DNA of 64,000 nt. Origin: Ascidiella aspersa (lineage: Eukaryota). The stretch spans positions 26,102,001 to 26,166,000 of the forward strand of contig OZ004612.1 in NCBI GenBank assembly GCA_963924565.1, given 5' to 3'. A program made the position numbers and the translations under genes. Below the pieces are notes generated by a model. It saw only the letters and a program-made list of their open reading frames with translations. It ran no database searches and was not told where the DNA came from. Shown here in pieces: positions 1,465 to 64,000 of this stretch (the first letter of the stretch is position 1; each line of letters starts with the position of its first letter).

Positions 1465-2479
1465 GTTATCAGTTTCCAAAATCTCGTGTTAAACTTCTAG
1501 TGAAAATATAACGGTTTAATCGTTAACGAATTTCCACGACTAAAGGTCAACAACAATATGGCAAGAAAACCCATATATTTTGTGTCTCGTATTTTGTTTG
1601 TACCAAACGTATTCAATAATGTTGGAAATTTGTTTTAAAATGTATATAAATGAAACATGTTTAGTCTAAACCTTGCACTCCGCAAATAATGGAGTAGCAG
1701 TCTCTTATCGTATTTGTTATTTGTAAACAAGTTGCTAAATTTAGTGATTGGTAAATCATAGAACTTAATTTTTAACAGAACATGAAATACAAGGACGTCG
1801 AAACGTCGATTGATTATAAAAAACTGCTGGATAAGCAACACTCGAATATACATTATGCCTGGCAGCAATAGCTTATTTCATAAAATACAATGTTAACCTA
1901 TAACACCTCAGCTAATCACATACATTGCTATGAAACAATTTAAACTTCACTGAAATGCTGCGCTAATGAGAAAAAGGTAAACAAAACCATAGCTAACGTC
2001 ATGTTCAAATCCACAGCTACAACAACATAACTCTGTATATATTTTTCCACATTTATCTCGTTTTGTGAATATTCACTCCTGACTGCAACTTTCAATATTT
2101 TAAATAACAAAATCCCCGCAAAGTGAAAACAAAGACTAAAATAATTAAACAAAAGCAGAAAATTTAAGCACACACCTATTACTATACGAACTTTGTTGAA
2201 AAACTACAAACCTAAGATAACTATTTATTTCAACAATTGCACGGTTAGCAACATTATATTAGAACACTGCTTAAATATATACAAAGCGTTTTTGAGAGCA
2301 AATTATCTCATTTCTTGCTACTACTGTTTTACGTTTGTAAGATATCAACAATAAACACCAGTCGCCGCGTGAAAATCATGAAAAAAATGTTCTTCATTGT
2401 GACGTAACACGGATGTACACCTGTTGTTCCTGTCGCGTTTTGGGTCAGGCACAAGCAAACGTCTTTCAATCACTTAAAG

Positions 2480-14098: not shown

Positions 14099-17000
14099 TC
14101 AGTAAATATTATTCAGTCCGACAAATTCTAAGGATCTGCTTCCAGCAGAAATCCAGCACTTTACCCAGTCGAGCGGCTTCGAACCAGTCGCTAACTTGTA
14201 CGCGCCGAACAAACCAAGCACAGAAAGGATCGCGTAGGAACAATAAATTTCCCGACGTGCCCTGGCCATGGTAGGGTCTTGTTTAAACATCTCGTCGGTA
14301 AATTCGCCGCCCTTGTTTTTATGCGGGAAAGGTTTGGAGGGAACTTCTTTGCCCAGAAAGCTACACAGCGGGCCCCAGCCCTCTTTCACCGAGAAATGGA
14401 GAAACTTGTCTTTGGGCGCGTTCTAAGAAATGTAAACAACCTTAAGTTGACTAAATTTGATTCTACCAAAATCCTATCCACCGACTTTGGATAGTTTCGG
14501 TATAGCTTTATATTTTTAATACCGGTTTAAAGTTTACACCGCTGTTGTTCAAATCTAACAGTATTGTATGAATACAAACTCTGGTTTAAAATCAAGAAGT
14601 ATGGTCGCTTGGCTTGCTACATATGTTTTGTGTCGCAACACAAGTTTAAAACTGTCGTTTTGTAATTCACAATGTCAAAGACAAAATTTAATCACTGTTT
14701 TTACAAGTATACAGTCTTAATTTGCGTTTCTTTGTTTGCATTCGTCAACTTTTCATTGGTCGTTTACACTTTTGACAAAGCTTGTATTAAAATAAAATAA
14801 AAATTGATGCATCCAGGGCTGTTGGGCCGGAGTCAGACTGGGGACTCGACGGAGTCCGTTTATTCCGCTGGTGTCGGACTCTTGACTCAAGCTACAAGTA
14901 AGACTGCTCGTCAGACTACTCGACGGGGTTGGACTAATAGAGATGTTTTGACCGACTTTCCAGTACTGGATGCAGCAGTAGTGATATGGTAGGCTGTGTA
15001 AATGGTTCAATTTATTGTTTTTAGTGCCGTGTAATGTAATATTATTAATATTTATGCAGCCATTCGCGGCTCCATAGTAGGACTGGATAAATTACAAAAG
15101 AGGTGCTACACTTGGAAGTAAGGAACGTTTGTCAAAAGTTACGACAACTTTAGAGTGGTTCAATATTTAAAAGGTGTAGCTTTAACATGGTTATACAGTT
15201 ACGTTGTTTGTTCACATATAGTGACGATTTCTTTGATGGCGAAACATATAATATATTATATGTAAGATCTTTTAATAGTGTCTGACCTGAATTGCTAGCT
15301 TTACTGGAGTATTCTGCGACATAAATCTTACAAGGGTCAAGGTGATTTCCAACATCACATATTCACTACAACTTTAACTATGGCATAATCGGATTCACCG
15401 ACGACCGCTATTGCATTCACACTTAACCCTAAGGGAAGCAAATACAAAATGTTTATTTTTTTGTAAGTTATCGTTTGGTTAAAAAATTCGTGAAAATTGC
15501 ATTGTAATTTTTTGAAAATTGCATTGTAATTGATTAGACCAGTGGTTCCCAAACTGTTGGCCATGGCCCATGAGTGGGCCACAAGACTATTTTCGTTGGG
15601 CCATAGAGCTATTTTAAACATAATCCAACTAATAAGAATATCAAAGCCCATACAGAAGTAGGTATCATCAGATGTTGAAAATGAATAGAGAGTTATTTGA
15701 AACGTTCAAAATGCTACTTACTTCTGTATGGGCTTTGATATTCTTATTACGTCTTACTACAACCTCCAACCATTATGCTCCATAATCCAACTAAATATGT
15801 TATGTTTTACGAAAATAGTTGTTAGCATATTTTAAACTTATAATAGGAACGAGGCCATTTTTTGGATTATTTGGATGTTGTTAGAATCAATGTATTTATT
15901 GGGAAATTGTCCGACTATATGTAGGCGTAAATTGGGAATACAAAAAGGTAACGGCACATGTTGGGCCACAAACTGTTTTAAGAAAACAAATTAGGCCACG
16001 GAATAAAAAAGTTTGGGAACCATTGGTTTAGAGTTTAGACACTATTGCAGTGTAAACAATATTGAGGAGGTTCGGATGAACATTAAGTTCGATTTCGGCC
16101 ATAGAGAAATAATCACGACTCGTTTGGTTATTTGCCAGAGGGGACCGATTAAGTACTTTCCACAAATAGATGCCTGAAGTAAGTCAAACGTTTATTTCAT
16201 TATTGTTTGTTTCAGTCGAGGTAATCGGTTTATTGTGCTGGAGCCGGACTGAACACTGGAGTACGTAAAACTACCCAGTTCCAGAGTCGCACGCGCGCAT
16301 GCGCATAACCAAATTTCGTAACTGATAAACCTCAAACGGTAAATTGTGAATGTTGTGGAACGCAACCGCGCCATTCCCGAGCACGCGGCTCGAGGCATTC
16401 TTGTGTTATTTTAATTGCTATGCGTTGTTTGTGTGTACGCGCTTGATTTGTCCCTACTGCAGGAATGTAATTGGTGTGTTTGCAATTACTTCGTGAGCCT
16501 ATAAAAGGCTGTTCACTTACTACTACGTTACCATTCCATTTTACTGATTTCGACTGAATACAACCTAAGTTACAACAAAATGTGCTTATTTGGACTCTGT
16601 AAAGAAGCAAGGCGCAAACGTGATTGAAAACACAACAGTGAAGGTGGAATAGCATTTGATGGAATTTTCCAAAATAACTATTTTGGATGTGTGAGTTCAT
16701 TTTATCGACGTCCATAGCCTCGCTTTGTTTAATAGTATTCATTTTTTTGTAAGTTTACCGCAGTGAAATATGCGACATTCTCAGAGGCTGAATATTTTAG
16801 TCCATTTTTGTTTTAAATGGTAAATTATAGTAGTTGTTACGTCTTAAAAATAGACTTACCTGTATAACGTTAGCGTTGTGACTCCTGTACGCTAATTTGC
16901 ACACGAGCTCATTGAAGCGATTTTTTCCGAACCAGGCAGCCGTCGTTTCGTCCCAAAGAAACGTACACATCACTAAATCAAGAACGCGTTTTGTTAACTT

Positions 17001-18585
17001 TAAAGTGATTTGAAATGATTTAAAACCATTTTGTTTATTTCTATTCAAAGTTAACAGTTACATTTTTGGTCTAACATTGATTTTCTAGATTAAGATCCCG
17101 ATTTTACCATAAGTAGGCTACAGCTTTTAGTTATTACTATAGGGTTATTCGATACGTGTTTTTTAATTTCCATATAGCTGTTACGTTAGGTTGAAATTAC
17201 TGCTATCCGATACCAAATGACGTCATTACAATGGTAATTTAAGAAAAATTATTCATAATGATAAGTAGGCTACAATGGTAATGGTTTTTGTAGCCTACTT
17301 AATTTTGCCATCACCCAACTCATTTGTCTAAAGGACTTTAGTCAAGTCAATTCATTTGTCCAATAGATTTACATCAAGTCATTTTGTCCAGAAACTTAAG
17401 TCAAGTAAATCATTTGAAAACAGTGACTAAAGTGCACTTCAGGTCAAGTTGTTGCAAATAACCTGACTTAGTGGGACTTAAGTCATTTTAAAAGACTTCT
17501 TTACAACACTGGTATACAGTTTTGTTGCAATGAAAAAATGTAAAGATGTTGGAGAATAAATTTTGTCATTACCAGGCCTTAGTATAACCTACTTAATTTT
17601 CCCATAAAACGGTAATAACGCCTCAGGGTCGGCGACAAATAAGTGTACATCCTCATCGTGAACGTTTGTTCAGTTTCCATCTGCTTTTCCATACTCTTCC
17701 ACCAGATTTCCTCGTTTTCCCTCGTCATCAGAATAATCTACAGTGCAAAAACTATATTTAAACAAGTTTTGTACAGAAAATATATTAGGTATATCCATTA
17801 CAAGGGTGTGATTGGTAAGTTGTGAACTTGTGAACCGCGATTCGTATCAGGACCACTAATGGTATGAATGCAGCAAATGGTTCACTGGTGCTGGTGGCCA
17901 TGACCCCCAGGGTATAAAATTTGCCCATTTTAAGTTCGTAAATAAAAACGTTTTCGCAAATCTAATTTGCGCTTTGTGCTACTCGGTATCATCTTTCTAA
18001 TGAAGCTTTTGTTTTGAAAGTAAATTCTGTCTAATCTATAACTTTAACAAACTAATTTAACTGTGTAACGTTCCTAAGGTTTACTTTTGATGACTCCGCG
18101 TTTCAATGTTACTGTGTGATGTCACATGTGACGTAACTTTGTAACGTCACATTTAGACGTAACTTTATGACGTCGCCTCTAAAAAAAAGTCATGATCCCA
18201 AAAAACTAACGCCCTTTAGATCCACGCCTAAAGCTATAGCATTCATATTTGGACGTAAAACACTGTATAGTTTTCGCAGTCAAACATTTAACTGCTGGAA
18301 ATATCCTTCGAACTAGTTAAACGTGCGCATTACCTTCGATTCAGGAAAGGCTTCGTGGATTTGCTGCCAAAACGCACACGCAGGTACGTCGGTAACGGCG
18401 TCAACGTTTGTGTACATTCGACGGAAATCTTCTGTACTTCCACCAGTCTCAAAAATCCGCTCCCACTGGGCTCCATGATTGTTGTAATGGTCCATGTAGT
18501 CGTACACGTTGTATCCCAGTTCCTGTAGAGCGGCCGCCATCGTTTTGGTGCCTGTTTTGCAAGTCCCGGCGTATATCACCTTCAT
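14099..18585 (-). CDS. Sulfotransferase-like P-loop protein (Sulfotransfer_4 family) with C-terminal hydrophobic segment; 4 exons
   Basis: Exons 18585-18334, 17737-17593, 16972-16860, 14422-14099; all GT-AG, phases 0/1/0 consistent. Motifs: MKVIYAGTCKTGTKTMAAALQELGY; VDAVTDVPACAFWQQIHEAFPESKIILMTRE..WW.S; YRSHNANVIQNAPKDK; EGWGPLCSFLGKEVPSKPFPHKN. Confidence 0.9.
14814..14960. mobile_element. Truncated GAGTCG-repeat MITE in sulfotransferase intron 3
   Basis: cagggctgttgggccggagtcagactgggactcgacggagtcc matches the left end of 25921-26340. Confidence 0.65.
15540..16025. mobile_element. hAT-type MITE (CAGTGGTTCCCAAAC) hosting a hairpin element
   Basis: TIR cagtggttcccaaac / gtttgggaaccattg; approximate TSD gattagac / gtttagag. 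Confidence 0.75.
15630..15780 (-). mobile_element. About 150-bp hairpin element (31-bp perfect inverted repeat) flanked by a 14-bp direct repeat
   Basis: Arms 15630-15660 and 15719-15749 (taataagaatatcaaagcccatacagaagta); flanks cataatccaactaa at 15619-15632 and 15781-15794. Confidence 0.75.
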
Positions 18586-20627
18586 TCTTCCTATAGGTTG
18601 TCAACCTGCAAACTATCCAAATTATGCGTTATGCCAACCTATGGCTCGCGAGCCTTATATGGCTCTTTTAATGAAAGAATCTTGTTGGCAAATAAATCTA
18701 AGCTATCATTTTACAGCATGATCTTAATAAAATTGCAAGCGGCCACTACCGCTCTTCTCACTTTATATTTCCTTATTTATTACGCATGGTAGCAAATTTT
18801 AGGCGCTTCGCGCGAATTTCTTTATATCCATAATGCTCTATTCTTACCACGGAACTCCGTAATCAAAGTTGTGCAAACTTGGCTTATTAATTTTTGGTGC
18901 ATATTATATTATGTTCTGTCCTTCAAATGAGAACAAAATAAACGTTTCTGCTCTGTTTACTATTTTTTGCCACTCTATAACTAGATGTTAAAAATATTGT
19001 ATGGCTCTCATGGAAATACAACACTAATATTTGACTTTTAGGGCTTCCTTAGCTAAAAACGTCAACGAGCCCTGCGTTATTCCAAAGGTTTGTAACGTAG
19101 GCCCACATTCTTATGGCCCGGACAATTTTGTTTAAGTAGTCTATTTAATCGCTATATTGACTGTTTTTGTTGTTTCTTGCGGGGTCTTTGGTAGTTTAAA
19201 CTGGGCATCCCGTTACAGCAGTGTAGGAGTATACTAGCAGCAATGTTCGAATATATATACATACTAACATCACTGATCACATCGACGTTACTATTAGCAT
19301 CACATTGTAGCGACCCCGATTATTCCTGTATAACATGCATTTTGCTTTTGGTCATGAAATAAGTGTTTATTATTTTAAAATTTAAACAAGTGCTGATAAA
19401 TGTTTTCCTTCTCTCTGTAAAAGTTGCACCCTGTGCAGTTCATTTTCACTTTGCATGTCTGTTGTATAGCCTACCAGTGTTGTAATGGCTAAAGTGCACT
19501 TATGTTACTGTTTGCGAAGACTTATTTTAGATCTATCAGGTTTTACAAAACTGACTTGACATTTTAAAGCTAAAATTTTTTTTAATTGTTTTTTAAAATT
19601 ATCACTTCTATAATGAATGGATCTTACTATTTGTTTCGTTTTGTGTGTATAGCCTGCTTTGCAAAATATAGGCTAGGTCAGAAATGGAATGTGCTTGTTT
19701 ACAACACTGCTTATTCCCTATGAATGGTATGGGTACAAATTGCTTGCAATTTCCCATAAATTGTGCAGCTATTTGTGTTTTTCACAAACTGTGCAGTAAT
19801 GGTTTTGCTACTAAATGCGTTTCTTACAAAACCATTGTGGTATGCCTCAATCTTACATTCAATTTTCCTGACATTACAAACTGTTGCGCACCCTGTGGTA
19901 AAGTATATTAACAGCGGTAGACTGTAGAAGTAGTACTCAAAACTACACCGTTTAGCTGACTGTTCAATATCTTCGACAACTGTAAATGGTTTTCAGTACG
20001 ACAACTGTAAAACTTACAAGCTAAAACACTTTGTTAAAAACATTTCTACAAGCTAGTTTAGCACTTCGTTAAAAACATGCAGCTCCATTTGGCTAACCCC
20101 TGTCTTAAGAAGGTAGGCTACTTGGGCCATGCGATGTTTGCTGAGCCCTTTATTAATAATTGTCAGGGGCTGGCGGTTTTCATTAGTGTTTACTTTACAG
20201 TTTGACATGTATGCTGGATTTAGTGAAACATTGTACGCACATGTTGAAAATATTATTACGTTGAAGATGTTAAGGCCTAAAATGACAAATATTTGCTTTT
20301 AAAGGTTTTTTCTACCTGCTGTACAAGTTAACAACATTGTATGTAATGAAATAATTAAAACAACTATCTACCAATGAACAAGTATGTTTTGTTGCAGACT
20401 GGACAAAATCAGAACAAAACTACCAAAATGTAAAGAAATCTTTTGGGCTGAAAGTCAACGGAACAAAGAGTCGAGGCTAATCTTTACTTGTCTACGTTTC
20501 AATAGCCCGACTTAACAAAGGTTTTGGAACAGCCTTTGTTATAATATATTCTATTGCTATGTTTGTCGCTCATGCAACAAATAAGGTTGCGAAGTAAGAT
20601 ATGCTGCGCCTTCCTAAGTAACTAGCC

Positions 20628-21526: not shown

Positions 21527-21730
21527 GGTGCTGGTCTAGAATTACATATTTAGTTTAACACTAACGGAAACGAGTTAAAAATTGCAAGGAAAGCATAAAT
21601 ATGTAAGAATATATATATAATAATGATACACGACCCAACCAAACCTAAACGCTAACTCTCACCTTAACCCAAATATGGTTAACAATATAAACACCCGGAC
21701 GAAAATGTGGTAGGATTCTAGACCAGCGCC
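21527..21730. mobile_element. Short inverted-repeat element with taaccc-like internal tract
   Basis: IR ggtgctggtctagaat / attctagaccagcgcc; related partial copy at about 31530-31660. Confidence 0.55.
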
Positions 21731-22266
21731 GACTTTTGTATGTCGGCTATTCTTAGTCTACGCTAACTTTTTATACGAAACCGGTAATAAAAATACAATA
21801 GTAACCTCTCTCGTAGAAAACCGTTTTTTACAAATCTAAAAAAGCTACGGTAAGAGAATCATCAAGCTCTGTCAGTACGCATCTGTAGGAAATACCCACC
21901 TCATGAAATACATGCCCCTTCGAAATCTTTTAACTCCTAAACACGACTATTTTTGTTGAAAATAGTTTACGTCGCGTTTTATTTGCGGAAACCCTACTTC
22001 CATTTGTGTTATTATTGTTCACACCAGGACACTGTAACTACCGGAACGTTACGAATAGCTTGGAACAAACAAATAAATCATAGTACGCAATCTGAAGAGG
22101 CTGCTTCAGTCTGTTGACAACTATATCTGCGAGGTAATATTGTGTCAACACCGTCACCCATCCCAAGAAAATTGCTAAAATTTCGCCACAAATGCTGCGC
22201 AAGGAAAATTAACAACTATGCCCAGTTTGTAATCCCACGACTATCAACAGTATATTCGATCAATTG

Positions 22267-22424: not shown

Positions 22425-25144
22425 TAATTTATTATCAAGCTACATTACAGATCCGTGCATAGGTGTAAACCAATATTCCATCAAGATCACCAAAAAGATT
22501 ACAGCATTCTCAGTAAAGTCGAAAGATTGAAACCGCCATCAAATTGCTCTCAATAACACAGACTTCGAATTTTATGCGAAATGAACTGCAAAATTTAAGT
22601 GCGCAAACGACTGCACAAGCAAACAACGTGTGTATATATTTTTCTGGCTAAGAGCGGTCTATTTAGTACCCTGGATAACATAATTTAACTAAATGTCAAA
22701 TCAGAATTGTAACGTTAGCTAAACTTTTATAATTTCACACGAGGTTGTTGCGAGATAATTGAATCACTTTGACTCTGGGGTTCTTAAATTTTTTACGCCG
22801 ACCTCTAAAATGTTTTTGGTTTACGGCATTGAACTTTGAGAGATGACGTCAGAAACTGCGTCATAATTTGAGTAGACTTTAGGAAACCTGACGTTTCGGT
22901 CAAAAAAAAATGAAACGGATATAATCTATAAATTACGTTTTTTTTCTTTTGAAAATTTTAATTTACTTTTTTTTTGTTTGAAACAAATTATTTAACTTTT
23001 TTGATTTCACGTTTATTTGACGTTAGCTTTCAACGCACCAATAATAGCACTTGCGTATTTTGACAAATATTATTGCCATTGGGCAACTATAAATTCCTTG
23101 CCAACAATTGCAGCGTAAATATTTATATAAATTGTCCAGTTTGCCTGTTTAAATTAGAGAATACCGGTTTAAACCACCAATCAGAGGTTTGTTTATTTTT
23201 CTCGTGGAATGTAATTATGTTGTCGCTGACACTCGAACGACACACAACGCATGCACACAAGGATGAATAGGCGAGGATATAGTGCCACAGGAGGCAATTA
23301 AAATTTCACAAAGGGGCCCTAACACAATAGCTTATTGACATTTGTCAATTAGCAAATTAGACACGTGAAAAATCAGGGATCGCCAAATCTATATAATTTA
23401 ATACTTTTAAATTGCCTGTCACACTTCTATAGCAAAGAGTATTAATTTATAACTAGTATTAACTGCATGGTTGAATTACTTACAAGCATTTATCGAAACG
23501 AGAAAAGGTAAATGAAACAATTAATTTTCCAAAGGATGCCTTTTTCTTCGTGATTGGGACGAACTCAATGCTACCAATCTCTAGATTCTGTTAAGAAAGA
23601 AAATACCTTTGTTTGGTAAATTGGTTATTGACAGTACATAGAAAGTTCTCCCCTGCTTGAATAACACCTTGAAAAAGTTTTGACTGCGGAGCAAAACAAC
23701 TTTACAACTTAAATTTGATGTCTAGTGTATTTTTTGTTTAACATATTGGTAGGCGACGTTTTTATCTATGATTTACAAAAAGGCCAAACAATATAGACAA
23801 TAAATACAATATGCAAATTGATGTATGTAATTAATATATTCCTTTATGGTTTTGCTTCGATCTTTTACGATATGGAGAAAAGATCAACAACTAGAAATGT
23901 CGGAGCAGACTTGATCCCAAAATTAACAAAAATAGTTAAAATATTATTATTATTATTATTTCATCAATTATTAATATATTATTTGTTTCTACAGTGCGGA
24001 CAAGTATGCAAAATAACTGTAGATATTTGTTTTTAAAATTGAGCCTAATAGTCTTGGCTTTACAGAGAGAGGGGTCACAGGGCCAGGACGTTATATCTAA
24101 CGTGACAAAATAGTTTTGATCGAAAAATTTGGAAAATAAATCGGTGGTAAACTATTTTCCATTTTCGATATGCAAAGGATTTAAAAGGAAAATGGAATTT
24201 AAAGATTTGCCCTCTCTACTGTTGATATGGGATCCATAAAGCAGCTTTAACAAGTTTAAGCCGCATCTGGTTGTTCAAACATTGCGACCGGTAGTAAAAC
24301 GATAGCAATGTTCTTTACGTGCAACCAAAAATGATTTTTCTACGTCATTCTTTTTTAACTGTTACATTATTACTCACGAAATGTTATCTCGACCTCAATT
24401 TGGCCAGTGTTAAAATTTTGGTTCGATGGTTTTAAAATGAAACTAAGAAAGTACGGTCAATGATTCTTTGCCACGGTCTCAGACTATCTTGGGTCTTGTT
24501 AGTTATTGCGCATAAACTTACATCTACAGCAGATCGTTAAACTGCCGATTCACAAAAAAAAACTAGGAAATACTCCGATTCGCGAAATTTGAAACGATTG
24601 TAACAGCTTCGTCACTATTTTTGGACAACAAATATATTGTTGCTACGAGCATAGTATAAGAGGAAGCTCTTGTTGTACATCCTGGAGTATTAAATAAGCG
24701 AATTTGATAGTCTTTTTTACATTTTGCTTAACTATACGTTATATTATGGCCGGAAAAAGATGCTATATACGGTTTAGGCGATGCACAGTACAAAAATGTG
24801 TGACCCTTGATCTATAAACATCTGATGTATCTTGAAGTTTATTTGCAGGCGGGGCTATTGGCCATTTAGTTGAAACGCGTAGGGAGGCTATACATAGTTA
24901 CAAAACTTTTAAAAATATAGAATTATGAACGCTTAAAAGGATCAATCATGGCCTGTCTTTAGACTGTTTTATAGAAGTTTTAACAAGTAGTAGCACGCCG
25001 ACTTCCCTATCATAAAAACGGGCAACACTTAAGATCTTAAAAAATGTAGAACCTAAGGCAAGACACAGTTGTGTTGAAATTCGATACTTTAATGTGCAAC
25101 ACGGAGGCCTACAGGCAAATGCAATAACAACAGCATTGTTTTAC

Positions 25145-28100
25145 CTTTTAGACTCTCACAGTAGTCTCCCGTCACGAATTTGATGCAGTCGCACTTGCTT
25201 GTCCCATCAGGTCGTATTTTACAAACGCCGGCTTTTAAGCCAAATATTTCGTGGCACGATTTCCGGCCCACCTCACAGTTTTCGCGATCAGCGCAGCAAA
25301 ACACGGTGCCTGGCAAGGCTGAAAAGCACAACAATACCAAACATACTCTGAAAACAACACGATAAAATTTTTAGTCAAATTAAAGTTTTGCTTGTAAGGG
25401 ATTGACTTGGGTAAACGTTGTTTAAATTGTCTAGTTAATGTGTTTTGATGTGTTAACTTAATAAACGTTTTTTGGCAGTAATGTAATGACTAAATTAAAT
25501 GGTTTGACATGTGTACTACTTATTTTTCGGCTGAACCTATTTTTTTGCGAAATTACTCGGCATGACTAAAATCATTTTGGAAAGAAACTTGAGTTACATA
25601 TTTTCAAGTGTTTTCACTTTTTTCTAAAAATGCACTGAGGAAGAAAGGTTAACAAACTTATTTTGGGAAGTATTGTAATGACTTAAATCAATGGCTTGAT
25701 CTAATGGTTTCAAATGACAGAATTATACTAAGTTTTTGGCAAATTACGCAACACATTTGGCTTATGCTCGGTTATCGGTATCGGGGTATTGGACATCCCT
25801 ACCAAAGAACTAACTTGACATTTACTGACAATTGTAATAACTTTGCCTGAAACTTAAACGTCGATAACTATAAGTAAGACTTTCAGTGACTTGGTAGTCA
25901 TTGTTTAGTATGGTGTTAACCAGGGCTGCGGAGTCGGAGTCGGACTCGGGACTCGACGGAGTCGGTTTGTTTTGCCGGAGTCGGACTCGGGACTCGAGTA
26001 AGACCGCGTAAAACTACCCGAGTCCCGAGTCCGACGTGCGCATGCGCAGTATCAAATTTTTCAACTGTTAAGGCGGCAAATGTAAGTTGTAAAAGTGTAA
26101 TAGCAAATGGTGAAATAGTTTTCAACCATGTCATGGGGGTTGATCAATTATGACACCAATATGAGTGGATTGCAGAAAATCCACCTTAATTTAGTTGCGT
26201 AAATGGGTAAAATACAGGCTGTAGAGTCGGAGCTGGACTCAGGACTCGGGACTCGGGAGTTGGACTCGGGTGTATTTTTTTGGCCGGAGTCGGACTCGGG
26301 AGTCGGACTCGGGTTGTTTTTAACCGACTCCGCAGCCCTGGTGTTAACCTAGTAATCCTATAGGGTTATCAGTTGTGTGGTTATTATACTAAATGACCAT
26401 ACTGTATGCCTTGGGGCTAATGAAAGTGTTACTTCAATTGTACGTGTTGTTAATACTCGAACAAAGAATAAGTGAACCATAAATAATTAGTATAGTTCAG
26501 TGAACAAGTTGTTGTTGAAATTGAAGATCACCAATGATTTTTATAGTCATTCAAAAGACTTGACTTAATTCAAGTCTTGTGAGCAAAATAACACAATTTG
26601 GATAAAAAAAGTTGTTTGGGGAAAATTAATTGACTAATCTTGAAGTGCTATAACTGAAAATGTTTCAGTAAATTGAACTACTTAAATGTCAATTAGAAGT
26701 TCTTATCTTGCTACTAATTGTATGGTCCTTGGAGTTTTATTATGCAAAATGTTCAGAATAGAGCGTGTTCACCGAATTTCGTAAGGTCATTAGTTATTCT
26801 GGATGCAAATGACTTAAACTGCTATTTGTTAAAAGTGACTTGACTTGGACTTGATATGTTTTGCGAATGACATGACTGGAACTGTAGTCATTTAAAAATG
26901 ACTTCTTGGCAACACTCACTTTCTCTATTGGTAAATGTAAGGTTAGTCAGAGTTCTACAAAAATTTGTTTACTGATAAGTACATTGTGTTTTGAACGATT
27001 TAATACAACGAACATGGCAGTTCGCTGTAACTTCCATAATGCTTTCAATTAGAAGTTACATTATATAGGAACGAGCGAAAATGAATTGATAGAAGTCGTC
27101 TCACCGATTTCACAATCCCTGCCGGTGTACCCCAGCTTGCAGACACATTGGTGGTCGTTGTAGTAATTATCACACATTAAGATATTGTTGTTAAGAAAAG
27201 TTTGAGTCTGATCAACGTTGCAGGTCATCTCGGCGCATTGATCTGAATAGTACGAAATGCGATTTAAAAATAGGCCTTCGCAACGCTGTGATCAAGAGCG
27301 TTTTTTGTACAGATTAATCCAAATACTTTTCTATATAAACACTTACAAAATGAACAACTTAAGATTAACCGAAACATGCATGTTCAGTTTCTACAAAGCA
27401 AAACACCCTAACAGCAAAGTCCAAAAAATAATTGAAAATGTAAAATAGGTATATTACAGGTCAAACCTCGACAAATACCAATAGACGCACATTTGAAAGC
27501 TTATCATAACGTTTCAGTGATAACAAGCAATTTCTGTTGAACAAAAAAATTTTTATTGCTGTGTTTAAGAAATAGTCTAAAGATTTAATAGATTTGAGTA
27601 AAGAATCTTTCTTTTGCAATCAATTGTCGTCGTGAGATTTACATAAAAGGTATGTTTCGTTAAACGTTTATAGCGTTTTATTATTATTACTTTTACTGTA
27701 ACTTTACCAATATTTATTTAGACTAAAAATATCAAATTAAACTGTGCAATTGAATAGTATATTAGCGAATAAGTCAACTGACACTTCACATATGCAAAAT
27801 TATGACACGTTTGGCATGTAAAATCTTAAGTCACGTTGAGAGTTTTTAAAGGCAAAGTCATTTTTAGTGGTTCCTGCTTTGTCTAGGCGGCCCCAGGTAT
27901 CTTTAGCGGACACTTACGATGTGGTGATATTTTTTCGTTTCGTGACATCTAGAAACTGGCTGTATGCAAACATTTACATGACCCTGGGTTGGTGTAATTA
28001 TTTACCAATTCTGTAAGGGTTTGCCTACATATATTTCCTTAAACCTAATTATGAAGGATAAACGTGAAGTAGTGCATCTCATGATGGTGCAAAATGATAC

Positions 28101-30118
28101 AGCGTTGAAATACCGTTCATTTCACTTCTATTAAAGCCAGTGTATAGATATTTCATACTTTTGCTTTTTAAAATTTTGAAAAACGTGACTTGATTAAAAC
28201 TGTACAGAAAGCCATCGCAGACCCACCGAATCTGTCTATCAGGGATGCAAGCAAATTAGGCTAGGAACCAACAAGCCTGCAGTGAGGTTCGAACTCACGA
28301 CCTCCAGCCTTGCCCATACCAGGACGGTTCGGCACGCTAATGTAGTATTTTAGGCTGCCGTGCTTGTATCATTGCTACAGATTCGGTGAGTCTGCAATGG
28401 CTTTCGGTGTACTAATGATATGTAAGCCGTAATCGTTGGTCAACAAGCAGCTTCAGAAGGGCTACAGATAATAGTTGTTGAACACATATGTGTGTGTATC
28501 TTTCATTGTATATTAATTATTAAAACATATTTTAATTTCAGTATTTTAAAAGTTTTTGCCTTTAAAACGCAGCGTGCTTTAACGTTGCGCCATAAAGAAC
28601 TTAGAGGCAAATGGAAAAATATTCGACATATTTCTTTTTTATAATTTTGTTTATTTTTTCGTTCGTTTTTGCGCATTAAGCTTACAGTACTTTATAAATA
28701 TTATTCAAATGTGAGGCCTATGTAATAAATAGTTGCACGGAATCCGAAATAAATGCCAGTAAAAGAAAAAAATCGCGTCATAACGCCTAGAGTGGTCTTT
28801 GTGTGCGCACAGTCTTTTAAAAAGGGCAATGCAACAGTAACACTGCTTTAATTTGTAGCAAAAGAAAAACATTTTTTCGTTCATTCTCGGACAATTACCG
28901 GGTTAAAGCAATTATACGCACATTTTAAGTTCGAATCTTGTTTTGAACATGAAACTTTTTGTTACGTAGTATGGCGTAAATTCTTGTGATGTCATGTCGG
29001 AATAATTGTGTAAAATAATACTTGGCAAAGCCAGTAAAATTGATTTCAATATTCGCGATGAAACTCACCCTTCAAATGATTCCACTTCGCCGTCTGAAAA
29101 ACAAAAACAACAAGAGTTAGCTTCATATAATTATTATTTAATTATGGTTTTACAACTTGTAATTTTTTATTTGTGGTTTCACAACCATCAAAGATAACCT
29201 TAAAGTCAAGCTGACGTCCGTAAAACTGGTCTATAACAGGGAACTATACGCTTAATTCACTATACGGCAGCTAACTTTGCACTCATTACGTTAATTATAA
29301 CAATTTTGTAACTATTTAATTGTTCGCCAAGAGTATTAGGATCTCTTCAAGGGTTCCTGAAAAGAGGGTTATTAGTGTTGTAACTAACTATGTCAATTAC
29401 TTGACTTGACTTAAGTGCACTTAGGTCACTGTTTCCAAATGACTTGACTTCATTTGAAGTCTTTTGAGCACAATGATCTGAAATTTTGGATTTTGGACAA
29501 ATGACTTGGGTTGAAATGAGGTGTTTTTCCATTTAACATTATTTCATAAAATTGGTTATTTATCTCAAATTTTGTACAAATTATTTGCTTGCTCTTTGTT
29601 GGGTTTGGATTATTTTTTACCTGAGTTAACGCTCATAATGGGACGATCTTATCAATTTTAATAGTATATCGTTTAATTTGTATGACAACGACTAATTTTG
29701 ACTTGAAATTGACTTGCTCTAATTATGACTTGACTGGGGCTTGACTTGTTATGGAATAAAAATTACTTGACTTGGACTTAAGTTATTTTGCAAATGACTT
29801 GACTGGGACTTAATTACAGATTGCTTGTACTAATATAAATACAAATTGTCAACGGTGTCACGCTATGTTTAAGATTTGAATTGCAGCTTTTTTAATGTAA
29901 AAAGTGTCCGACAAATAAATGACAGCGCACAGATGATAAAACTACTGTCTTATTTCTTACAACTGTCGCGCTGTCTTCTGGCCATATTTCCTTAATTTCC
30001 TCCTTGTCGCATTGTTCTGTGATGCACTCGGATTTGAATGAAGCCTCATTTGCAGCATCAACGTTTCTCTTTGCGCGAGGAAAGAACTGAGAAGCTTCAC
30101 GCTTGCTGAGAAAAACGC
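25145..30118 (-). CDS. Vitamin K-dependent Gla-domain protein: propeptide-Gla, aromatic stack, EGF, EGF (partial model; first and last exons unresolved)
   Basis: Exon 30118-29961: VFLSKREASQFFPRAKR/NVDAANEASFKSECITEQCDKEEIKEIWPEDSATV (phase 1 to 0). Exon 29093-29069: 25 bp, TAKWNHLK (0 to 1). Exon 27242-27105: DQCAEMTC..MCDNYYNDHQCVCKLGYTGRDCEI (1 to 1). Exon 25318-25145: ..NCEVGRKSC..VCKIRPDGTSKCDCIKFVTGDYCESLK (1 to 1). All GT-AG and in frame. Confidence 0.88.
25921..26340. mobile_element. Intact GAGTCG/GGACTC-repeat hAT MITE
   Basis: TIR cagggctgcggagtcgg / ccgactccgcagccctg; exact TSD gtgttaac; lies in the intron between the two EGF exons. Confidence 0.92.
28208..28405. repeat. 28-bp inverted repeat enclosing a tRNA-derived (B-box-like) segment; SINE-like
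   Basis: aaagccatcgcagacccaccgaatctgt / acagattcggtgagtctgcaatggcttt. The core reads gaggtcgtgagttcgaacctcac on the minus strand; a similar core is at about 3262-3290, and a homologue of the right flank at about 50576-50700. Confidence 0.5.
29390..29812. mobile_element. Degenerate GACTT-family MITE in a Gla gene intron
   Basis: gacttgacttaagtgcacttaggtcac...gacttgactgggacttaa, colinear with 12144-12670. Confidence 0.75.
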
Positions 30119-31961
30119 CTGTGAACGAGACGAAATTTTCCCGAAAACAACTTTAAAATATAATAGGTTGAACACGAAACATATTTAAAACGTTCAAAAT
30201 GCTACATACTTTTGTATGGGCATTGAAATTTTTACAACAACCATCAACCATTATGAGCTAAACTTTAAAATAAAAGTTGATTTTAAATGGTCGAAATTGG
30301 ATCGAGATTAAAGACGCGTTTCCTAGGTTTAAGTTTCAATCATACATTAAAACATAAAATTCCAAGTTTCTTATGAACCGGTTAAACATTTATCTTGCCA
30401 AATTTTCGACACGAAAACCTGTCCCAATTTAACTTTTGTTATTTTTATTACTGACATAAGAAAGCGATTTGAAACATAGTGTCTGGTTTTCGTTTAATTA
30501 ATTGTACGCAATCTGAAGAGGCTGCCTCAGCGTTTTGTCAGCTATCTGCGAGGTCATTTTGTGTCAACACTGTGTCCCGTCCCAAGTAAGCGAATTGCAC
30601 AGTTTGCAAAAACGCAAGCACCATTTATGCAGAATGGATGGGCAAGCAAATATTTGTCTCGTGTTGGTAATCTCACGGCAAGAACGGGGTATGAGCACAT
30701 CTCATCGAAAATCATATAACATTCTTGTAGAAATTTGGAGATCTCTAATAACTAGCCACAATGAAGTCAACGTGGATGTAAGCAAGAATAAAACCTGCTT
30801 TAAATAATACTATAGATGTTTTAATGCAATGTTCATAATATTAGTTAATGTGATTTTTTGTGCACTACATACTTTCTGGGCAAACTGTTTATTTCCAAAA
30901 CGCTTTGTGCAGTCCGCAAAACCAATGTTTTGCCAACTAGACTAAATTGAAGTAGCTTTTTTGCATATTGAAGTTATGGTGTTCTTAATAATATTATGAA
31001 TTTTTTTTTCATTTGCAATGACCCCTGCAACTGACTGTTCGTTCTAGCTTGGACCAGTTTGTGTAGTGCTGTGTAATGATATCATTTAGGTGAATGTCAC
31101 GCAGAATCGTAATGTCTTTTGTCATTCAAGTTTATTTTGGATGTGTATGGTGGCCCATGATTGTCATCCTGTTTTTTTTTAATTGTTTTAACTACACAAA
31201 ACAATAATATTAAAAAAATGGTTTACAAAACTAATGTTAAAAAATCGACGTGGCCCAGGATTGCCATTCCCATATAAAACGCATTACGATCGGACAACCA
31301 CTATCCACTGCCATAATAAAATACTTAAATATATATGCAAGTATTCCATAGTGTTCTGTTCAAAGCAAGCGCTATAGATTTGCCACTTTGGCCGGTTGGC
31401 CTTCTGGCAGAATTTGTAACCTTGCAAAGTTGACGGTTTTTGTTTTTTATATAAAGATAGACTGTGTAAGTTATTCTAAAAATGCATAATATTATAACTG
31501 TTCAGTGTTTGACATAGTAGTATGTGGGCTCTGGTCTAGAATCCTACCACAACGCACATTATAGTCTTTGAGATGGGGTAGGTCAAGTAGTATTCTTAAA
31601 TAATAAATATAATAATACTTCTAAATGCTAACACGCACCCTAACCCAAATATTGTGCGTTGATTTAATAATTGTTTCAACGCTGTCTATATAGTATATTT
31701 TTATTAGTTTTATTTCCCCCTGGCTATTTCAATTTTTAAAGTCGTTTCGTTACTGTAAAAAAGTGGCTAAAATGTGAAGTTAGTTTGTGACCAGTTTTTA
31801 TTGGCAAACCCTGAATAATGCAATGCTATGAATTGTTTTTTTTTTTTTTAATTTCTGCTATAGAAACTAAAAATGAACGACTGGAAGAATAATGAAAGCC
31901 TAAAGGCTAGTCTAAATAAATAAGTAAGTAAAATCTTAGTAGAAGTGAGTTGTTAGATTTT

Positions 31962-41100: not shown

Positions 41101-44100
41101 TTCAGCTTAAACTTTGTCTGACTAATTTTCGAAAAGAATCTGGAAGCGGTTTTGCCGTTTAACGGGAAATGGTATTTATAGGCAAATGTAGTTTAAACAA
41201 TATCGCTATAATTTCCGAAAAACAAGGACATTGTTGAATGGGGAATGATGTATAATATTTGTCAGAAGACTGCACGCGTCGTTCACAGCTTAACAAAACA
41301 GCAGATAACTAGTTTTTTGCGGTAATGTCGTTACCTGTTCTTATCATTGAAATAAGACCTCACCCTTATAATATATAAGACTTTAGAGTCAAAACAATAC
41401 TTTTCACGCACCCGAAACGTTTAAGCTCAAGGTAAAGATATTTTTGGGGTCGGTGACTTACTTTGTTCGTTGCAAAATGTCCATTTTTTTTAACTTTGGC
41501 CAATGTTTGGAAACAGTTATTTTAAAGTTTGTTTTTCGATATTGGAATAGCACAGTGTAAATATATGATGCAAGTTTGAGTTATAATTTGGATTTCACGC
41601 GTGATGTCAAATTATGGAAATGGTCGAGCGACAGGTCATCTGTTAAAAGATTAACCATTGCTGCAGTTTTAAGTAACCTCATTTTGAAGTAATTCAAAGG
41701 TAGATGTTACCTTACCGTTTTTACACATTCTGTACATTTGGGCTATACGTGTTTTTTAACTTGAATGGGCTAAACTGGAGTTTGCCAACTACTGAAAAAA
41801 CGTCAGACTCAATATTAAAAGAAAATACATTTTCATTGACAGTTGGACAAACAGCGTTAGTCCAGAGGTAAACCGATTGATACCATCAGGATTCCATGCT
41901 GAGAAATAAGTCTGTGACCCCAATTAATCTATTATAGTTAATCATAACCATTTATCCGCAATCGGTGTGCCGCTACATTCCCGAAGGTGCGTTAGTTGCG
42001 ATTTCAAGGCTACTTTCTTGTGAGGAGTCGAATTAACACGAAAAATGTATATGTCATCAAGGAAGGTGTTTTGATCTTATGCAATAAGTAAGGTGTAGTT
42101 TTATGAACTTTCAATAATATTTAAAACTTTTCTAAAACCTACATTACCTGTTATCACCCGAATTCATGTATTAAAACTGTTTGTTTCATGACTTAACTAC
42201 CAGCATCTACAACCAGTACTAACATTAAGTGTCGTAACACCGTTAAAATTCATATCACTATACGTGTAGCAAAGTTGCGCTCACATACGTATCGGGAAAA
42301 TATCGTTGTCCTGTCAAGCCTCACTTACCTGGGGTTCATGCCGCTCTTGAAGTACATGAAAGGGTCGTTCCTCACTGCTCGCATAGACCGTGCATAGTTG
42401 GCCGCCCTAAACACAGGGAAAAACGGTGTTCAGTTACACAGCAAAACAAGCAGCCATAGCAGCCCTTTCTGTGGATGGTGTATACCAGTGGTTCTCAATT
42501 TTTTTTATATTCTTCAATTACAAGCCTAAACACCGACAATTCCTCCCCAGCAATAACCACGAAATATACTAGTTTTTTTATTGATACTTCGATGTATACT
42601 GCGGACAATCATATTTTTGCAAAAAAGGTTATTTTGATATTGAAATTGGAGTTACCAGAGTGGCCATGAAAATTCTACTAAAATATAAAGGCTGTAGCAG
42701 CCCTTTATATGAATGGTACAGACTACAAGGTTTTTGTCCAGAATCCGAAAACTAATTTTTGTTTCAGCTTTTCCTAGTCGCATAGCAATCAAAAGTGGGT
42801 CCCAATCATTTTTTTACACAAATGGAATTTTTATATTGAAATTGGAGTTACCAAAGTTGTAAAAAATAATTCTGCTGAAAAGCTGATCAGCAACATGTTA
42901 AATAAAATTCCACGTTTTCCCGTAAAAACATAAATTACAAAAATAGGCACGCCAAGATTGTCAATCGTCGGATTGGAAACAGCAAAGCGTTAGACAATAG
43001 TACATTAATTATAATTATCGGTAAAATAGGAAATTATATCAACTAAAATTTAACACACAGATCATCAACGATTGAGATTGGATTTGATTCAATTTCAAAT
43101 GGCACTAATTGGTTGAATTAAAAAGTTGGATTATCTTGTCAAGTTTTTACAATCAAATCGATAAAGTTGGAATTTAGGATAAACAGTTATATTGTTGGAT
43201 TAAGTGCCCAGTTTCTACTTAGTCGCTAGTATCACAGTAATCCAGTGAAGTACTCAATATAGTATAAGGCAGTTCATAAAGATGCCAATTATTCCTCTAC
43301 CAAACTGAAATAAAGTTGTTAATATCGAAATTTAAACTTAACATTACACACCAAGCCACTTGTAAGCTACTGCGGGGAAATAGTGCCCTAATCCCGGCGT
43401 AAAATGTTTTCTTGGCGACGCACGACAAAAAACAAAATGGCGGTCAACGATGTTGATCCACGAGACTGCCCTAGACATCGAATTTTAAAATTCTACACAC
43501 TATTTTCTCCGACACTTGTTTTTCATCATTGAAGAAGGTTATGAGAAAAGGGTAAGAACCATTACCGTATAGAAATCCCCTGTTGATTATGTTTTTTGTT
43601 TTTTTTAATTTTTTTACTGCGCTTACAACAACGTTATTTCATTTGTGTGTCACATTTATTAAATTAGGTTTTAAATGAAAAAAAAATGAATTTGTGCAAT
43701 GAATATTTCTTTTATTATTTAAAATTTCGATGTCTTCTAACAACCAAACTATTGAAATGAGCTAACACTTTGGAGCATAATGGTTGGAGGTTGTAGTAAG
43801 ACGTAATAAGAATATCAAAGCCCATACAGAAGTAGGTATCATTTTGGACGTTTCGAATAACTCTTTATTCATTTTCAACATCATGTTACTTCTGTATGGG
43901 CTTTGATATTCTTATTACAGCTAACACTTAAGTAGCCAAACTATGGTAACCTATAGTAGCCTACGCGACGAGTTTTTAGCACAGGCTTGGATTATTGTAT
44001 ATTCATTTTACTTTAAGTCCAGCATACAGCCATTATGGTCCAGAACTCCATACTACATTAGTCGGCAAACTTTATTAATCGCGGCCTAAAATTATCTTTT

Positions 44101-47100
44101 AAGTTCTATTAAAGGCCCATTCTACCTAAAAATTCTACGACAATAGGGGGGTAGGTCCAGGATTTGGGGGGCGAGGGCATAAAACAAAATTACGTCATAA
44201 AACAATTAATCCTAAAAAACCTGTTGTTCTCGAGCGAAATCGCGAATGTGCAGCTGGACTTTGTAGCGTTTACAGGTCACATGTGCAACATGCCTTAGTA
44301 AGCATCTGACTTTTGGGAAGAATAGATTTATTTAAACACTAAAATGTTCATAAGTATGAAACTAAACAAACACCTTTAGGCACGCCATTTTAAAATTCCA
44401 GTATATCAAATTTGCGGTATTTATTATGCGGCCCCCAACTACATGACATTATAAAGGTGAACATTAAAAATTACCCTTCCCACAAAAAGTGTCAGAAGGG
44501 CTCACATTTGGGCCGCGGCCCACAGTTTGCCGAGCTGACAATTAAGTTGACGAATTACTGATAGCCTAGAACGCGACGGGTAACTGCGTACAGGCTTGCA
44601 AACTAGGATATTCAATCTACCTTCAAATCCAACCTTCCAAAACTCCCCATATACTTATTTTCCGCCTGGGGCTATCGCTCGCACAGGACTTGACATTGAA
44701 TTGCTATAACTATGACTTGACTGGGACTTGAATTGCGACTTATTGAAAAAGACTTGACTTAGACTTAAGTTATTTTACAAAAGACTTGACTGGAACTTAA
44801 TTCATTTTAAACGGACTCGTTTACAACACGTCGGTATATATACTTACTTTTTCGACTGCGGCGATCTGTCGCGCTGCCTGCGGTTCTTGAACCAGTTGCT
44901 GACCTGCAGTACACTGAGGCCGGTAATCTTGGCCAGCTGTCGCTTGTCGTCGGGGTTCGGGTACTTCTGTTTCTTGTAGCACTCCTTGAGCGCGTTACGC
45001 GACTTCTCCTTGAAGCAGTACACCATCTCCTCGCCGTCCCAGATGGTGCGAGGCAGCGGCTTCTTGCGTCGGATGCGGTACTTGTCCACCGCGCCCAGCC
45101 GCCTACCGCGCACCTTCTCCGCTTCGGCGTAGTGCGCGCCGTACCACAGGCCCTGCAGCAGCTGGAAATTCCAAAGTTGTGAGGTTAGTCTGAAAGGTTC
45201 CAACACTGTGCTTAGCATTTTTGAAACCGTATAGACCAGGGATGTGCTAGCTTTTTAACCCAAGGGCCAAGCAAATGGGCTTTGCCTGGTCAGATCACGG
45301 GTCAAATACGTGTATGCGGGTTGGACAGCGGCTCAAACGCATTGCTAATCGACCAGATATTGGTTAAGCAAAGTGCTGACCACTAAGGGCAATTCACCTG
45401 TGTTTTCATTAACGTTTTTAATTTAAGTGGGCATGAAACTACTATAGTTTGAGGATCCGTATATAACTTTTAGTGCTTCTCAGCGTTGGGAAACTAACTT
45501 TTATTGAACATATACGGTAATTCAAAATAAGTCATGTATTGCACTAAAGGCAAAGGGCTGAAAAGGCTCATCACAGCATGCTGCGCACCTATAAAGCATT
45601 AGAAGACTAAACAAATAGATCATATCTTTGATTGCTTTTAGCTTGCAGTTTTCATTCAAAATTCATTTTGTTACGTCACAGTGGTAGCAGCATAACTACT
45701 GTCGGCGTCTTCGCGTATAGCTTTTATTGTTTAAAGTCTAATGCTTTTTTGTGAAAGGAAACAGTGCTCCTGAAAGCCTGGGCTCAGAGATCAGAAACCT
45801 GACCCTTTAATTACCACCCAATGAACTGCCATTTTCATGGTTTGGCGATGCCCTGTTTTCAGAGGCTCTAATTTCAAAAACGCAATGTCACCGCAAGTAT
45901 TATAGGTTGTGGTACGTCGTAATTACAACACCACTTCATAATAAATGGCAAAATGTTTGTTGAAATCATAAAATAACTTTTATCCGATAAAAATATCAAT
46001 CGTCTTAGATCTTTTAACTGAAAGACAGGTTATAAATCAATATTAAACTTCTAATTAAACCAGTTTATGCCAAAGGTTGCTGGCCAGTAGAAAAACTACA
46101 CAAAAAAGAAAAAAATCCTTATTCCTTGAATTCGTTCATGGTTACCAATTTACGTGAATAAACTTTCGTTTTTTTTTTAGCCTAACAAAAATATGTTTTT
46201 TTGTTACTCGACTTTTCTCAAGTTCCTAAAACTTGCTGGCAACAGCCGGACTGAGAATTCGGCAAATCTGTTGATTTGACTGAAACACTTTATCGCAAGT
46301 GGATTGCTTAAAATGCACCAGATTTTACGAATAAATAAAAACACAGGGCTATTGAGACTCGGAGATGAACTCGGGACTTAGCGAGTCGGTTATTTGACTT
46401 AAGTCGAACTCGTGACACCGGAGCCGGACTGGACTTCACGATTTCGGTCGTAGTCGGATTCTTGCTGTATTGAAGCCCAGTGTTTCGCAAACTTTTTTCG
46501 CGGCGGTCCGAATTCTAAGCGTAAGTAACAACTAATCTCTGGCGACCCAGTTGTTTTCAAAGCATTTTTTTTAATCGGACAAAAAAGAAAATAACATTAA
46601 TAAGTTCCAATATTATTTTATAATAATCAATGTATCCTTATGGCTTCCGCAATTTGCTCAAATTCACAGAGAAATTTCAGAATTAGTTCAAACGAAGAGA
46701 ACTACCGCAGTCGGCGAGCCAAATTGGGTGGTGATCAATGAGTTGAGGAACACTGTATTAAACTGACCCCGCAACCCTGCTGGTACCCCGCGTTATTTTC
46801 CAAGCAGCTGTCCAAGTCATTCACATGAACGTTTCGCGAAGTAAAAACATTATTGCATAACACCTTTTGTTCGCTTTAAAAGTTTTATACGGGACGCAAA
46901 GTCTATAGGAATTTTATATCAGGTGATGTGTTTTTGTTTGATTTACTTAAACCTATTGCCTATACATTGTGAAAGCCAAAAGGCTCTAGTCCCCATTCCT
47001 TTCGAGGCTAATTATGCCTAATTGCCGCATTGGTCTATTTTATATATCCTCACAATAAAAAAACCTTTTCAGGATAAAAACAGATAGGATATGATTAGTA

Positions 47101-63648: not shown

Positions 63649-64000
63649 GTGAACTTTTTTTTCTAAAAAAGGGCGATCTTTTGTGGAATTTGAAACCAAT
63701 GGCAGAAGGTTTCTGCTTGTCGATCATGGTTTGGCAGACGCGTATATAAACAATAAAACTTAAAAAGACTTCATTAAACACTATTTTATGACGTCATTCC
63801 CGTCACTATTTAAAGACGTCAGTATTCATTAACGTCGGACGGAAAAAAAGGGACCTTTTTTAGGATTTATGGATACCCTCCTGTATTACTGAAATGTGTT
63901 CCATGCTGAAAAAATATGCCATGGGCGGACAAGAAAAAAAATATGTGTGCCTTTGGAAGACAGAAAACATAGACATGTCCTGAGCAGATAAAAACAGTTG

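Follow-up and report, generated by a model that had tools for sequence, protein, structure and literature searches.

Gla proteins are few outside the vertebrates. What such a gene encodes in a clot-free chordate, and whether it bears on the origin of the clotting factors, is the question raised by a stretch of 64,000 nucleotides from the ascidian Ascidiella aspersa (assembly GCA_963924565.1, contig OZ004612.1, here C6:26,102,001-26,166,000), which is called the window below. In this window a first-pass annotation had noticed four minus-strand exons and had read them as a hidden vitamin K-dependent Gla-EGF-EGF gene with coagulation-factor exon architecture, possibly related to the module that gave rise to the light chain of the clotting factors. 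The window, which contains no N among its letters, was analyzed together with the whole genome (308.6 Mb searched). The observation of the four exons is confirmed and their interpretation is partly supported. The exons encode a unit of propeptide, Gla-like module, aromatic stack, EGF and EGF-like module that is homologous to vitamin K-dependent proteins. On balance we favor the view, held with reasonable but by no means full confidence, that the window carries exons 2-5 of a gene belonging to a family of small genes specific to its lineage, that the family product would be secreted and carboxylated, and that this copy has been under selection for most of its history.

Four exons, a paralogue and a short-Gla family

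Re-reading of the AG/GT borders and of the translations bore out all four exons (Table 1; window positions are given without contig name, and a slash marks an exon border). As read from the sequence, exon A lies between a pyrimidine-rich acceptor cag/GC and the donor GTT/gtaaga, and exon B, the 25-bp exon with a Trp that had been described, has excellent splice sites. The Gla frame had been said to be missing from the list of open reading frames; this is correct, since it has no start codon, although it is visible as an 86-aa frame from stop to stop. The locus is present in two DNA runs of the same species.

A six-frame search of the genome with the Pfam Gla model revealed a near-identical exon at C6:6.20 Mb, 20 Mb away on the window's own contig (L006, hereafter the paralogue), and the 30 kb around it were compared with the window. 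Colinear similarity in blastn and tblastx was confined to the four exons and one 170-bp block upstream of them, while the introns were unalignable. Nucleotide identities of exons A, B, C and D to the paralogue are 84, 72, 77 and 70%, and amino acid identities 88, about 50, 67 and 53%. The exon sizes of 158, 25 and 138 bp are identical in both copies, all splice sites are kept and so are 16/16 Cys. Conservation at exactly the four exons therefore excludes chance. The notion of chance open frames with a fortuitous Gla-like motif could appeal to the single-exon Pfam scores, all of which fall below the curated cut-offs; it is already refuted by the colinearity of the four exons in the paralogue, by family-wide conservation and by the profile matches described below, and we give it practically no weight.

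Further members came to light when the peptides of the EGF1 and EGF2 exons served as queries against the genome and the matching loci were read. At least six loci follow the same plan, two on C6 and four on C2 (C2a, C2b, C2c and C2d at C2:7.14-7.20 Mb). This plan comprises five exons: a signal exon of 73 nt, a propeptide plus short Gla exon of 158 bp, a 25-bp Trp exon, EGF1, and EGF2 with the stop codon. The signal exon was found in 5/5 members other than the window copy, where it begins with MNNF or MNSF and ends at a phase-1 donor; in the paralogue it occupies 6201960-6202032 and has the donor CAG/gtatat. The paralogue and 4/4 C2 members also have the 25-bp Trp exon. The EGF2 exon of the paralogue, C2b, C2c and C2d begins with [LI]PGTVFC and reaches a stop 4-23 codons after G-D-Y-C, and in C2a EGF2 is divided between two frames and reaches its end 9 codons past G-D-Y-C. 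The eight Cys of EGF2 are kept in the paralogue, C2b and C2c, and C2d is without the second one. C2c (L031, C2:7,165,000-7,175,000) has lost the last Cys of EGF1 (E-D-G-N-N) and the K-R of the propeptide start, and may be a decaying copy. The predicted family product is a small secreted protein consisting of signal peptide, propeptide, short Gla module, Trp stack and two EGF-type modules, after which it ends.

Propeptide, Gla module and EGF modules

Exon A encodes the propeptide V-17 F-16 L S K R E A-10 S Q F-7 F-6 P R A K R. In the structure of gamma-glutamyl carboxylase (GGCX) with factor IX, GGCX contacts the propeptide at -17 Val, -16 Phe, -10 Ala and hydrophobic residues at -7/-6 (PMC12647623), and V-17, F-16, A-10, F-7 and F-6 of the window occupy these same anchor positions. 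The propeptide features that had been reported from the sequence (Phe-16, Ala-10, a hydrophobic residue at -6 and RAKR) thus hold, and the first three coincide with GGCX contacts. In the alignment of the family F2, A8 and F11 of the propeptide are invariant in 6/6 members, and the residues R14, K16 and R17 of the cleavage site are invariant across the family, the dibasic propeptidase site directly preceding the Gla module. The 35-residue stretch after RAKR contains E-C-I-T-E-Q-C and K-E-E-I-K-E-I-W, and with them the E-x-x-x-E-x-C motif and the two-Cys loop; its residues E30, C31, E34 and C36 are invariant across the family.

When exon A was compared with Pfam, Gla (PF00594) was its only match, at 23.6 bits (E 5.8e-5, profile positions 8-33 of 41) against a curated cut-off of 27 bits, where the exons were scored singly and the last profile positions fall on the 25-bp exon. 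Other family members reached 24.7-24.8 bits in an hmmscan of the surrounding open frames, in which canonical Gla exons of this genome scored 52-56 bits; the short-Gla family as a whole spans 22-32 bits, compared with 52-57 bits for the canonical Gla exons of this genome. A phmmer search of the PDB with exon A matched nine chains, 9/9 of them Gla proteins, and a profile of the six family members matched 36 chains, all of vitamin K-dependent proteins. The top matches of this profile were the propeptide plus Gla substrates of GGCX complexes, namely factor IX (E 2.6e-6) and protein C (E 6.7e-6), followed by factor X, and the alignment begins at propeptide residue -17. Moreover, hhalign aligned the family with the four canonical Gla exons of this genome at 98.5% probability (E 3.5e-15). 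In this alignment, as in those with factor IX and protein C, 4-5 residues are missing from the family immediately behind the cleavage site. Some of the N-terminal loop, with the first paired Gla positions in it, is therefore absent from the family. The full loop, with the first paired Gla residues and the membrane-inserting hydrophobic residues, was not found in the Gla module of the window. The Gla-like domain of the first-pass annotation consequently stands as a homologue, though as a shortened one whose single exon scores below the Pfam cut-off.

The genome encodes GGCX, whose HTTM exons lie at C3:708-711 kb and whose lumenal-domain exons lie at C3:705-706 kb on the same strand, and VKOR at C1:34.53 Mb. 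The following route can be proposed for the family product. The signal peptide would carry the precursor into the endoplasmic reticulum, where the propeptide, by its V-17, F-16, A-10 and hydrophobic -7/-6 residues, would dock on the carboxylase, which would turn some of the ~7 Glu in the short Gla module into Gla; a furin-type protease would then cut after R-x-K-R. Carboxylation of these Glu residues is inferred from sequence. The result would be a secreted, calcium-binding protein of roughly 150 residues with an EGF pair for protein contacts and without protease, kinase or membrane part.

The two EGF-type modules differ in how clearly they can be assigned. EGF1 matched only EGF-type Pfam families, every one below its cut-off, and no calcium-binding EGF family; its best PDB matches are Notch EGFs (E 3e-5), with EGF1 of factor IX at E 0.057. 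EGF2 of the window had no Pfam match, and EGF2 of 3/5 members matched EGF families weakly. The EGF2 family profile gave weak PDB matches to chains of EGF fold, namely epiregulin, betacellulin, neuregulin and Notch. The HMMER comparison with PF00594 and EGF that had been proposed for the spliced peptide was run per exon, and it yielded a Gla match and EGF1 matches, none of which reaches the cut-off, and nothing for EGF2.

The first-pass annotation had further described two phase 1-1 EGF exons. For EGF1, which starts with DQC as stated, this is correct. For exon D a phase-1 donor AAAG/gtaaaa exists at 25145, but the frame reads past it, with a 20-codon tail behind the eight Cys, to a TAA at 25091-25089. 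The EGF2 exon is terminal in the family, which makes use of the donor unlikely and the 3' phase of EGF2 doubtful, and a phase 1-1 exon is not established. The paralogue terminates in G-D-Y-C-E-V-R-C-D-A-stop. Most likely, EGF2 of the window reads on to the stop at 25091-25089 and the donor at 25145 is possible but unused. A longer gene, in which the donor is used and further exons encode another domain, a membrane anchor or a protease, is quite unlikely in our view, even though the donor is a good one and the read-through tail of 20 residues shows no conservation. A stop lies inside the EGF2 exon of the paralogue, C2b, C2c and C2d, C2a ends soon after GDYC, the sequence further downstream shares no coding-type conservation with the paralogue, and between 25144 and the start of a sulfotransferase gene at 18600 no Cys-rich, hydrophobic, transmembrane or protease-motif frame was found. 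The protease motifs GDSGG, TAAHC and DIAL were not found in any frame of the window. A block at 21660-21731 that is colinear with the paralogue was rejected as an exon, as it contains stops.

State of the window copy

In order to compare the window with the paralogue, dN/dS (nonsynonymous to synonymous substitution rates) was calculated by Nei-Gojobori counts. The values are 0.21 for the Gla exon and 0.33 for EGF1, with an overall dN/dS of 0.47 at a dS of 0.53. With the C2 genes as outgroup, private changes in the window and in the paralogue number 4 versus 4 at the amino acid level and 23 versus 30 at the nucleotide level. For a neutral copy with ~0.27 substitutions per site on its branch, the probability of keeping one Cys codon was estimated at ~0.49 and that of keeping all 16 at ~1e-5. 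The intact Cys codons, frames and splice sites, together with the absence of an excess of private changes, therefore argue that the window copy was selected for most of its history. A second DNA sample differed at none of 258 exonic bases and at 26 positions in ~3.7 kb of flanks, a contrast that is not significant.

Several observations weigh against the reading of the window as a selected member of a carboxylated family. The Glu that is conserved in all other members is replaced by Thr in the E-C-I-T-E-Q-C of the window, and exon A alone remains below the Pfam cut-off. EGF2 has a dN/dS of 0.89, its AlphaFold model (five-sequence alignment) reached a predicted local distance difference test score (pLDDT) of 63.9, and Foldseek gave no PDB match below E 0.5 for it. 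The ancestral TAA motif is still recognizable in the window, where indels have put it out of frame. When all 64 kb were searched for the family signal exon with blastn-short, tblastn, motifs and a family hidden Markov model, no counterpart was found, and scans from 30119 towards the SIX gene upstream for an ATG followed by a hydrophobic stretch and a phase-1 donor gave weak candidates only, with no convincing one up to about 38000. Finally, in an RNA run (X3, tissue unknown), of which ~6% of the reads were sampled and placed on 24500-30499, depth was zero on all four exons and 622/622 placed reads lay on repeats. The RNA check for spliced exons that had been suggested thus gave no support; because only about 6% of one run was sampled, it is no evidence of silence either.

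Three candidates for a signal exon, at 35340-35271, 34738-34687 and 33130-33076, were rejected as weak and with poor donors. At the position of the signal exon of the paralogue the window holds unrelated sequence and dispersed repeats. Trans-splicing to the acceptor of exon A would not help, since exon A has no in-frame ATG.

The same observations could be explained by a copy that was dead on arrival, i.e., a partial duplication starting in the middle of intron 1, without promoter and signal exon, that has been a neutral unprocessed pseudogene ever since. The homology to the paralogue indeed begins inside intron 1, at 30432, the signal exon was not found, RNA reads are zero and the C-terminus is frame-shifted; furthermore, a dN/dS of 0.47 is the value expected from one neutral and one constrained copy. 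The missing upstream homology is weak evidence, however, because the introns are generally unalignable. At a dS of 0.53, roughly half of the Cys codons of a neutral copy should be gone and stops and indels should have accumulated, yet all 16 Cys, all frames and 8/8 splice sites are intact, and private changes are no commoner in the window lineage than in the complete paralogue. We regard such an origin as unlikely, and continue with a copy that was selected for most of its history. As the family first exon is missing and the ancestral stop is out of frame, this copy would either use an unrecognized 5' exon or have been disabled recently, and whether it is still functional is about an even question. 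For annotation, the lesson is that a copy with four clean exons can still be without its first exon; for further study, the complete paralogue at C6:6.20 Mb is the better gene.

The conserved block upstream of exon A (Table 1) carries CCAAT and TTTAAAA motifs and is possibly a regulatory or splicing element. A coding function was rejected for it, with stops in all frames and no ATG in the conserved core. Additional copies of the dispersed repeat that lies between this block and exon A are found at 15694-15777 and 43776-43859. The miniature inverted-repeat transposable element (MITE) in intron 3 has a very high copy number in both DNA runs and also occurs in the RNA reads. Another high-copy transcribed repeat, at about 28229-28445, contains a tRNA-like B box (gagttcgaacc), and ARAGORN calls no tRNA there; it is probably a tRNA-derived short interspersed nuclear element. 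The neighboring genes are listed in Table 1.

Table 1. Exons, repeats and neighboring genes in the window, and 25-bp Trp exons of other Gla genes in the genome
Feature	Position	Strand	Description
Exon A, propeptide and short Gla	30118-29961	-	158 bp; phase 1 to 0; family exon 2 of five
Exon B, aromatic stack	29093-29069	-	exactly 25 bp; TAKWNHLK plus 1 base; phase 0 to 1
Exon C, EGF1	27242-27105	-	138 bp; phase 1 to 1; six Cys; starts D/QC, Asp codon split
Exon D, EGF2-like, most likely terminal coding exon	25319-25089	-	eight Cys; 3' end at 25145 in the first-pass annotation
Possible polyadenylation signal ATTAAA	25088-25093	-	overlaps stop codon; inferred from sequence
Conserved non-coding block	30265-30432	-	73% identical to paralogue intron 1; only two copies in genome
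Dispersed-repeat insertion	30182-30255	-	between conserved block and exon A acceptor; absent from paralogue
MITE, 420 bp, intron 3	25921-26340		17-bp terminal inverted repeats CAGGGCTGCGGAGTCGG; 8-bp target duplication GTTAACAC
SIX-class homeobox gene exons (SIX1_SD, homeodomain)	44847-45254, 47098-47400	-	upstream neighbor, on the strand of the Gla gene
Sulfotransfer_4 gene, two exons seen	18316-18600, 14102-14422	-	next gene downstream
Single-exon open reading frame, 275 aa	7435-8262	-	only homologue carries acetyltransferase domain PF00583
Long open frame, signal peptide and at least 7 LDL-receptor class A repeats	1-1488	-	Pfam 168 bits; single exon; runs off window end
Split SH3 domain	62583-62885, 63338-63649	+	neighbor
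25-bp Trp exon, canonical gene	C1		GQKWEQLT; then EGF and calcium-binding EGFs
25-bp Trp exon, multi-EGF gene	C4		QTFWLKYK
25-bp Trp exon, multi-EGF gene	C3		DEYWRRYI
25-bp Trp exon, divergent gene L019	C1:33.0 Mb		TEMWNSLH

The clotting-factor question and known systems

The exon plan of F7, F9, F10 and PROC consists of a Gla exon (phase 1 to 0), a 25-bp exon (0 to 1) and two EGF exons (both 1 to 1). Human Gla exons of this type measure 161-167 bp, compared with 158 bp in the window, and the EGF exons of the vertebrate factors 114 and about 130 bp, compared with 138 and at least 175 bp; phase 1-1 is a general rule for EGF exons. At least four further Gla genes share the layout of a 158-bp and a 25-bp exon in this genome, namely three canonical ones (L001, L003, L004) and the divergent L019 (Table 1). 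The scan for 25-bp Trp exons picked up none for a Gla-kinase gene on C9 or for an array of Gla-like exons at C2:8.7 Mb. Being common to other Gla genes, the layout belongs to the Gla module and is therefore no signature of coagulation factors. Of the coagulation-factor exon architecture claimed for the window, the first three exons fit; the layout itself is generic, and the 3' phase of EGF2 is in doubt.

That the locus is a surviving relative of the Gla-EGF-EGF module behind the light chains of factors VII, IX and X and protein C, as the first-pass annotation had suggested, we consider very unlikely. Domain order and, as read in the first-pass annotation, intron phases do equal those of the vertebrate genes, a vertebrate protein labelled 'coagulation factor X-like' is the best match in a set of 1.84 billion representative proteins, and the top PDB profile matches are propeptide plus Gla segments of factor IX, protein C and factor X. 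However, the two-exon layout recurs in Gla genes of multi-EGF type, EGF1 is nearer to Notch and EGF2 nearer to EGF-ligand folds than to the EGFs of the factors, there is no protease exon, the Gla module is a derived one that has an N-terminal deletion when compared with vertebrate Gla and with the canonical Gla of this genome, and the family has the look of a recent local expansion. It is simpler to read the family as an expansion specific to its lineage. A direct descent of the family from a pre-protease Gla-EGF-EGF ancestor of the clotting factors has no specific support, and nothing specific stands behind a link of the locus to their origin. As the shared layout is a property of the Gla module and the EGFs show no special kinship to those of the factors, the locus adds little on that origin.

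The novelty of the family was assessed by a phmmer search with exon A (a 52-residue query) against the 1.84 billion representatives, in which relatives below ~45% identity would be missed. The sole match at E <= 0.001 was XP_072886986.1, 'coagulation factor X-like', of the stingray Hemitrygon akajei (43% identity over 39 residues). Like the window family this protein is Gla-EGF modular and without protease domain; unlike it, it comes from a vertebrate and carries two full-length Gla domains (97 bits) in the order Gla-EGF-Gla-EGF-EGF-EGF, and it belongs to a different family. Given this single match, nothing resembling the short-Gla family is annotated among these representatives.

Other Gla-type loci of the genome were noted in addition. 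At C9:11,721,500-11,731,500 (L002/L034) a transmembrane segment and the beginning of a tyrosine-kinase domain come after a canonical Gla exon of 52 bits, an architecture that we take to be of the ascidian Gla-RTK or Ci-Gla1 type. At C2:8,683,000-8,797,000 (L007, L008, L013-L017) at least seven near-identical Gla-like exons form a tandem array with a spacing of ~7-20 kb; they encode the propeptide VFVNKRDASKFLVRKKR and then only five residues before E-C-Y-E-E-V-C. Against Pfam Gla, L007 scored 26 bits (hmmscan), and the array as a whole 21.8-26.7 bits in the genome search. This array is a second Gla-type family, shorter still. The divergent propeptide plus Gla-like exon of L019 (C1:33,009,898-33,009,990) scored 16.6 bits, and its 25-bp exon lies 736 bp downstream.

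Tentatively, and with more doubt than conviction, it can be proposed that this genome has expanded very small, secreted, 'light-chain-only' vitamin K-dependent proteins (at least six loci, with the tandem array of still shorter Gla-like exons on C2 in addition), which, if carboxylated and secreted, would represent undescribed vitamin K biology outside clotting. If so, roles in, e.g., haemolymph, tunic or immune recognition would be possible, and the family would offer a natural experiment on a Gla module without membrane-inserting loop. A multi-copy minimal Gla-EGF-EGF family would add to the range of carboxylase substrates known from a clot-free chordate, and its members would be simple substrates for testing the extent of the Gla module needed for carboxylation and calcium binding.

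Among known systems, the ascidian Gla proteins share with the window family the combination of propeptide and Gla in a genome with GGCX and VKOR and no clotting cascade. Four such proteins, Ci-Gla1 to Ci-Gla4, were reportedly described from Ciona by Kulman et al. in 2006, and the four canonical Gla genes found here presumably correspond to this set of four and to the Gla-RTK of Halocynthia. In these canonical genes a full-length Gla module (52-57 bits) is followed by many EGFs or a kinase, whereas the short-Gla family has a shortened Gla module, only two EGFs and a stop, and at least six copies; it is additional to the four canonical genes. The non-protease vitamin K-dependent proteins PRRG and GAS6/protein S are similar in having propeptide and Gla, and PRRG2 and protein S were among the PDB matches. 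PRRG proteins, however, have a transmembrane segment, which the window family lacks, and no EGF, while GAS6 and protein S carry four EGFs and laminin-G domains, the latter absent from the window family. With the light chains of F7, F9, F10, PROC and protein Z the family shares the propeptide anchors at -17/-16/-10/-7/-6, the dibasic site, the E-x-x-x-E-x-C loop, the Trp on a 25-bp exon and the two EGF-type modules that follow. It differs from these vertebrate factors in the 4-5 missing residues of the N-terminal Gla loop, including paired Gla positions, in an EGF1 without calcium-binding EGF match and an EGF2 with two extra Cys, and in ending in or just after the EGF2 exon, with neither activation peptide nor protease exons.

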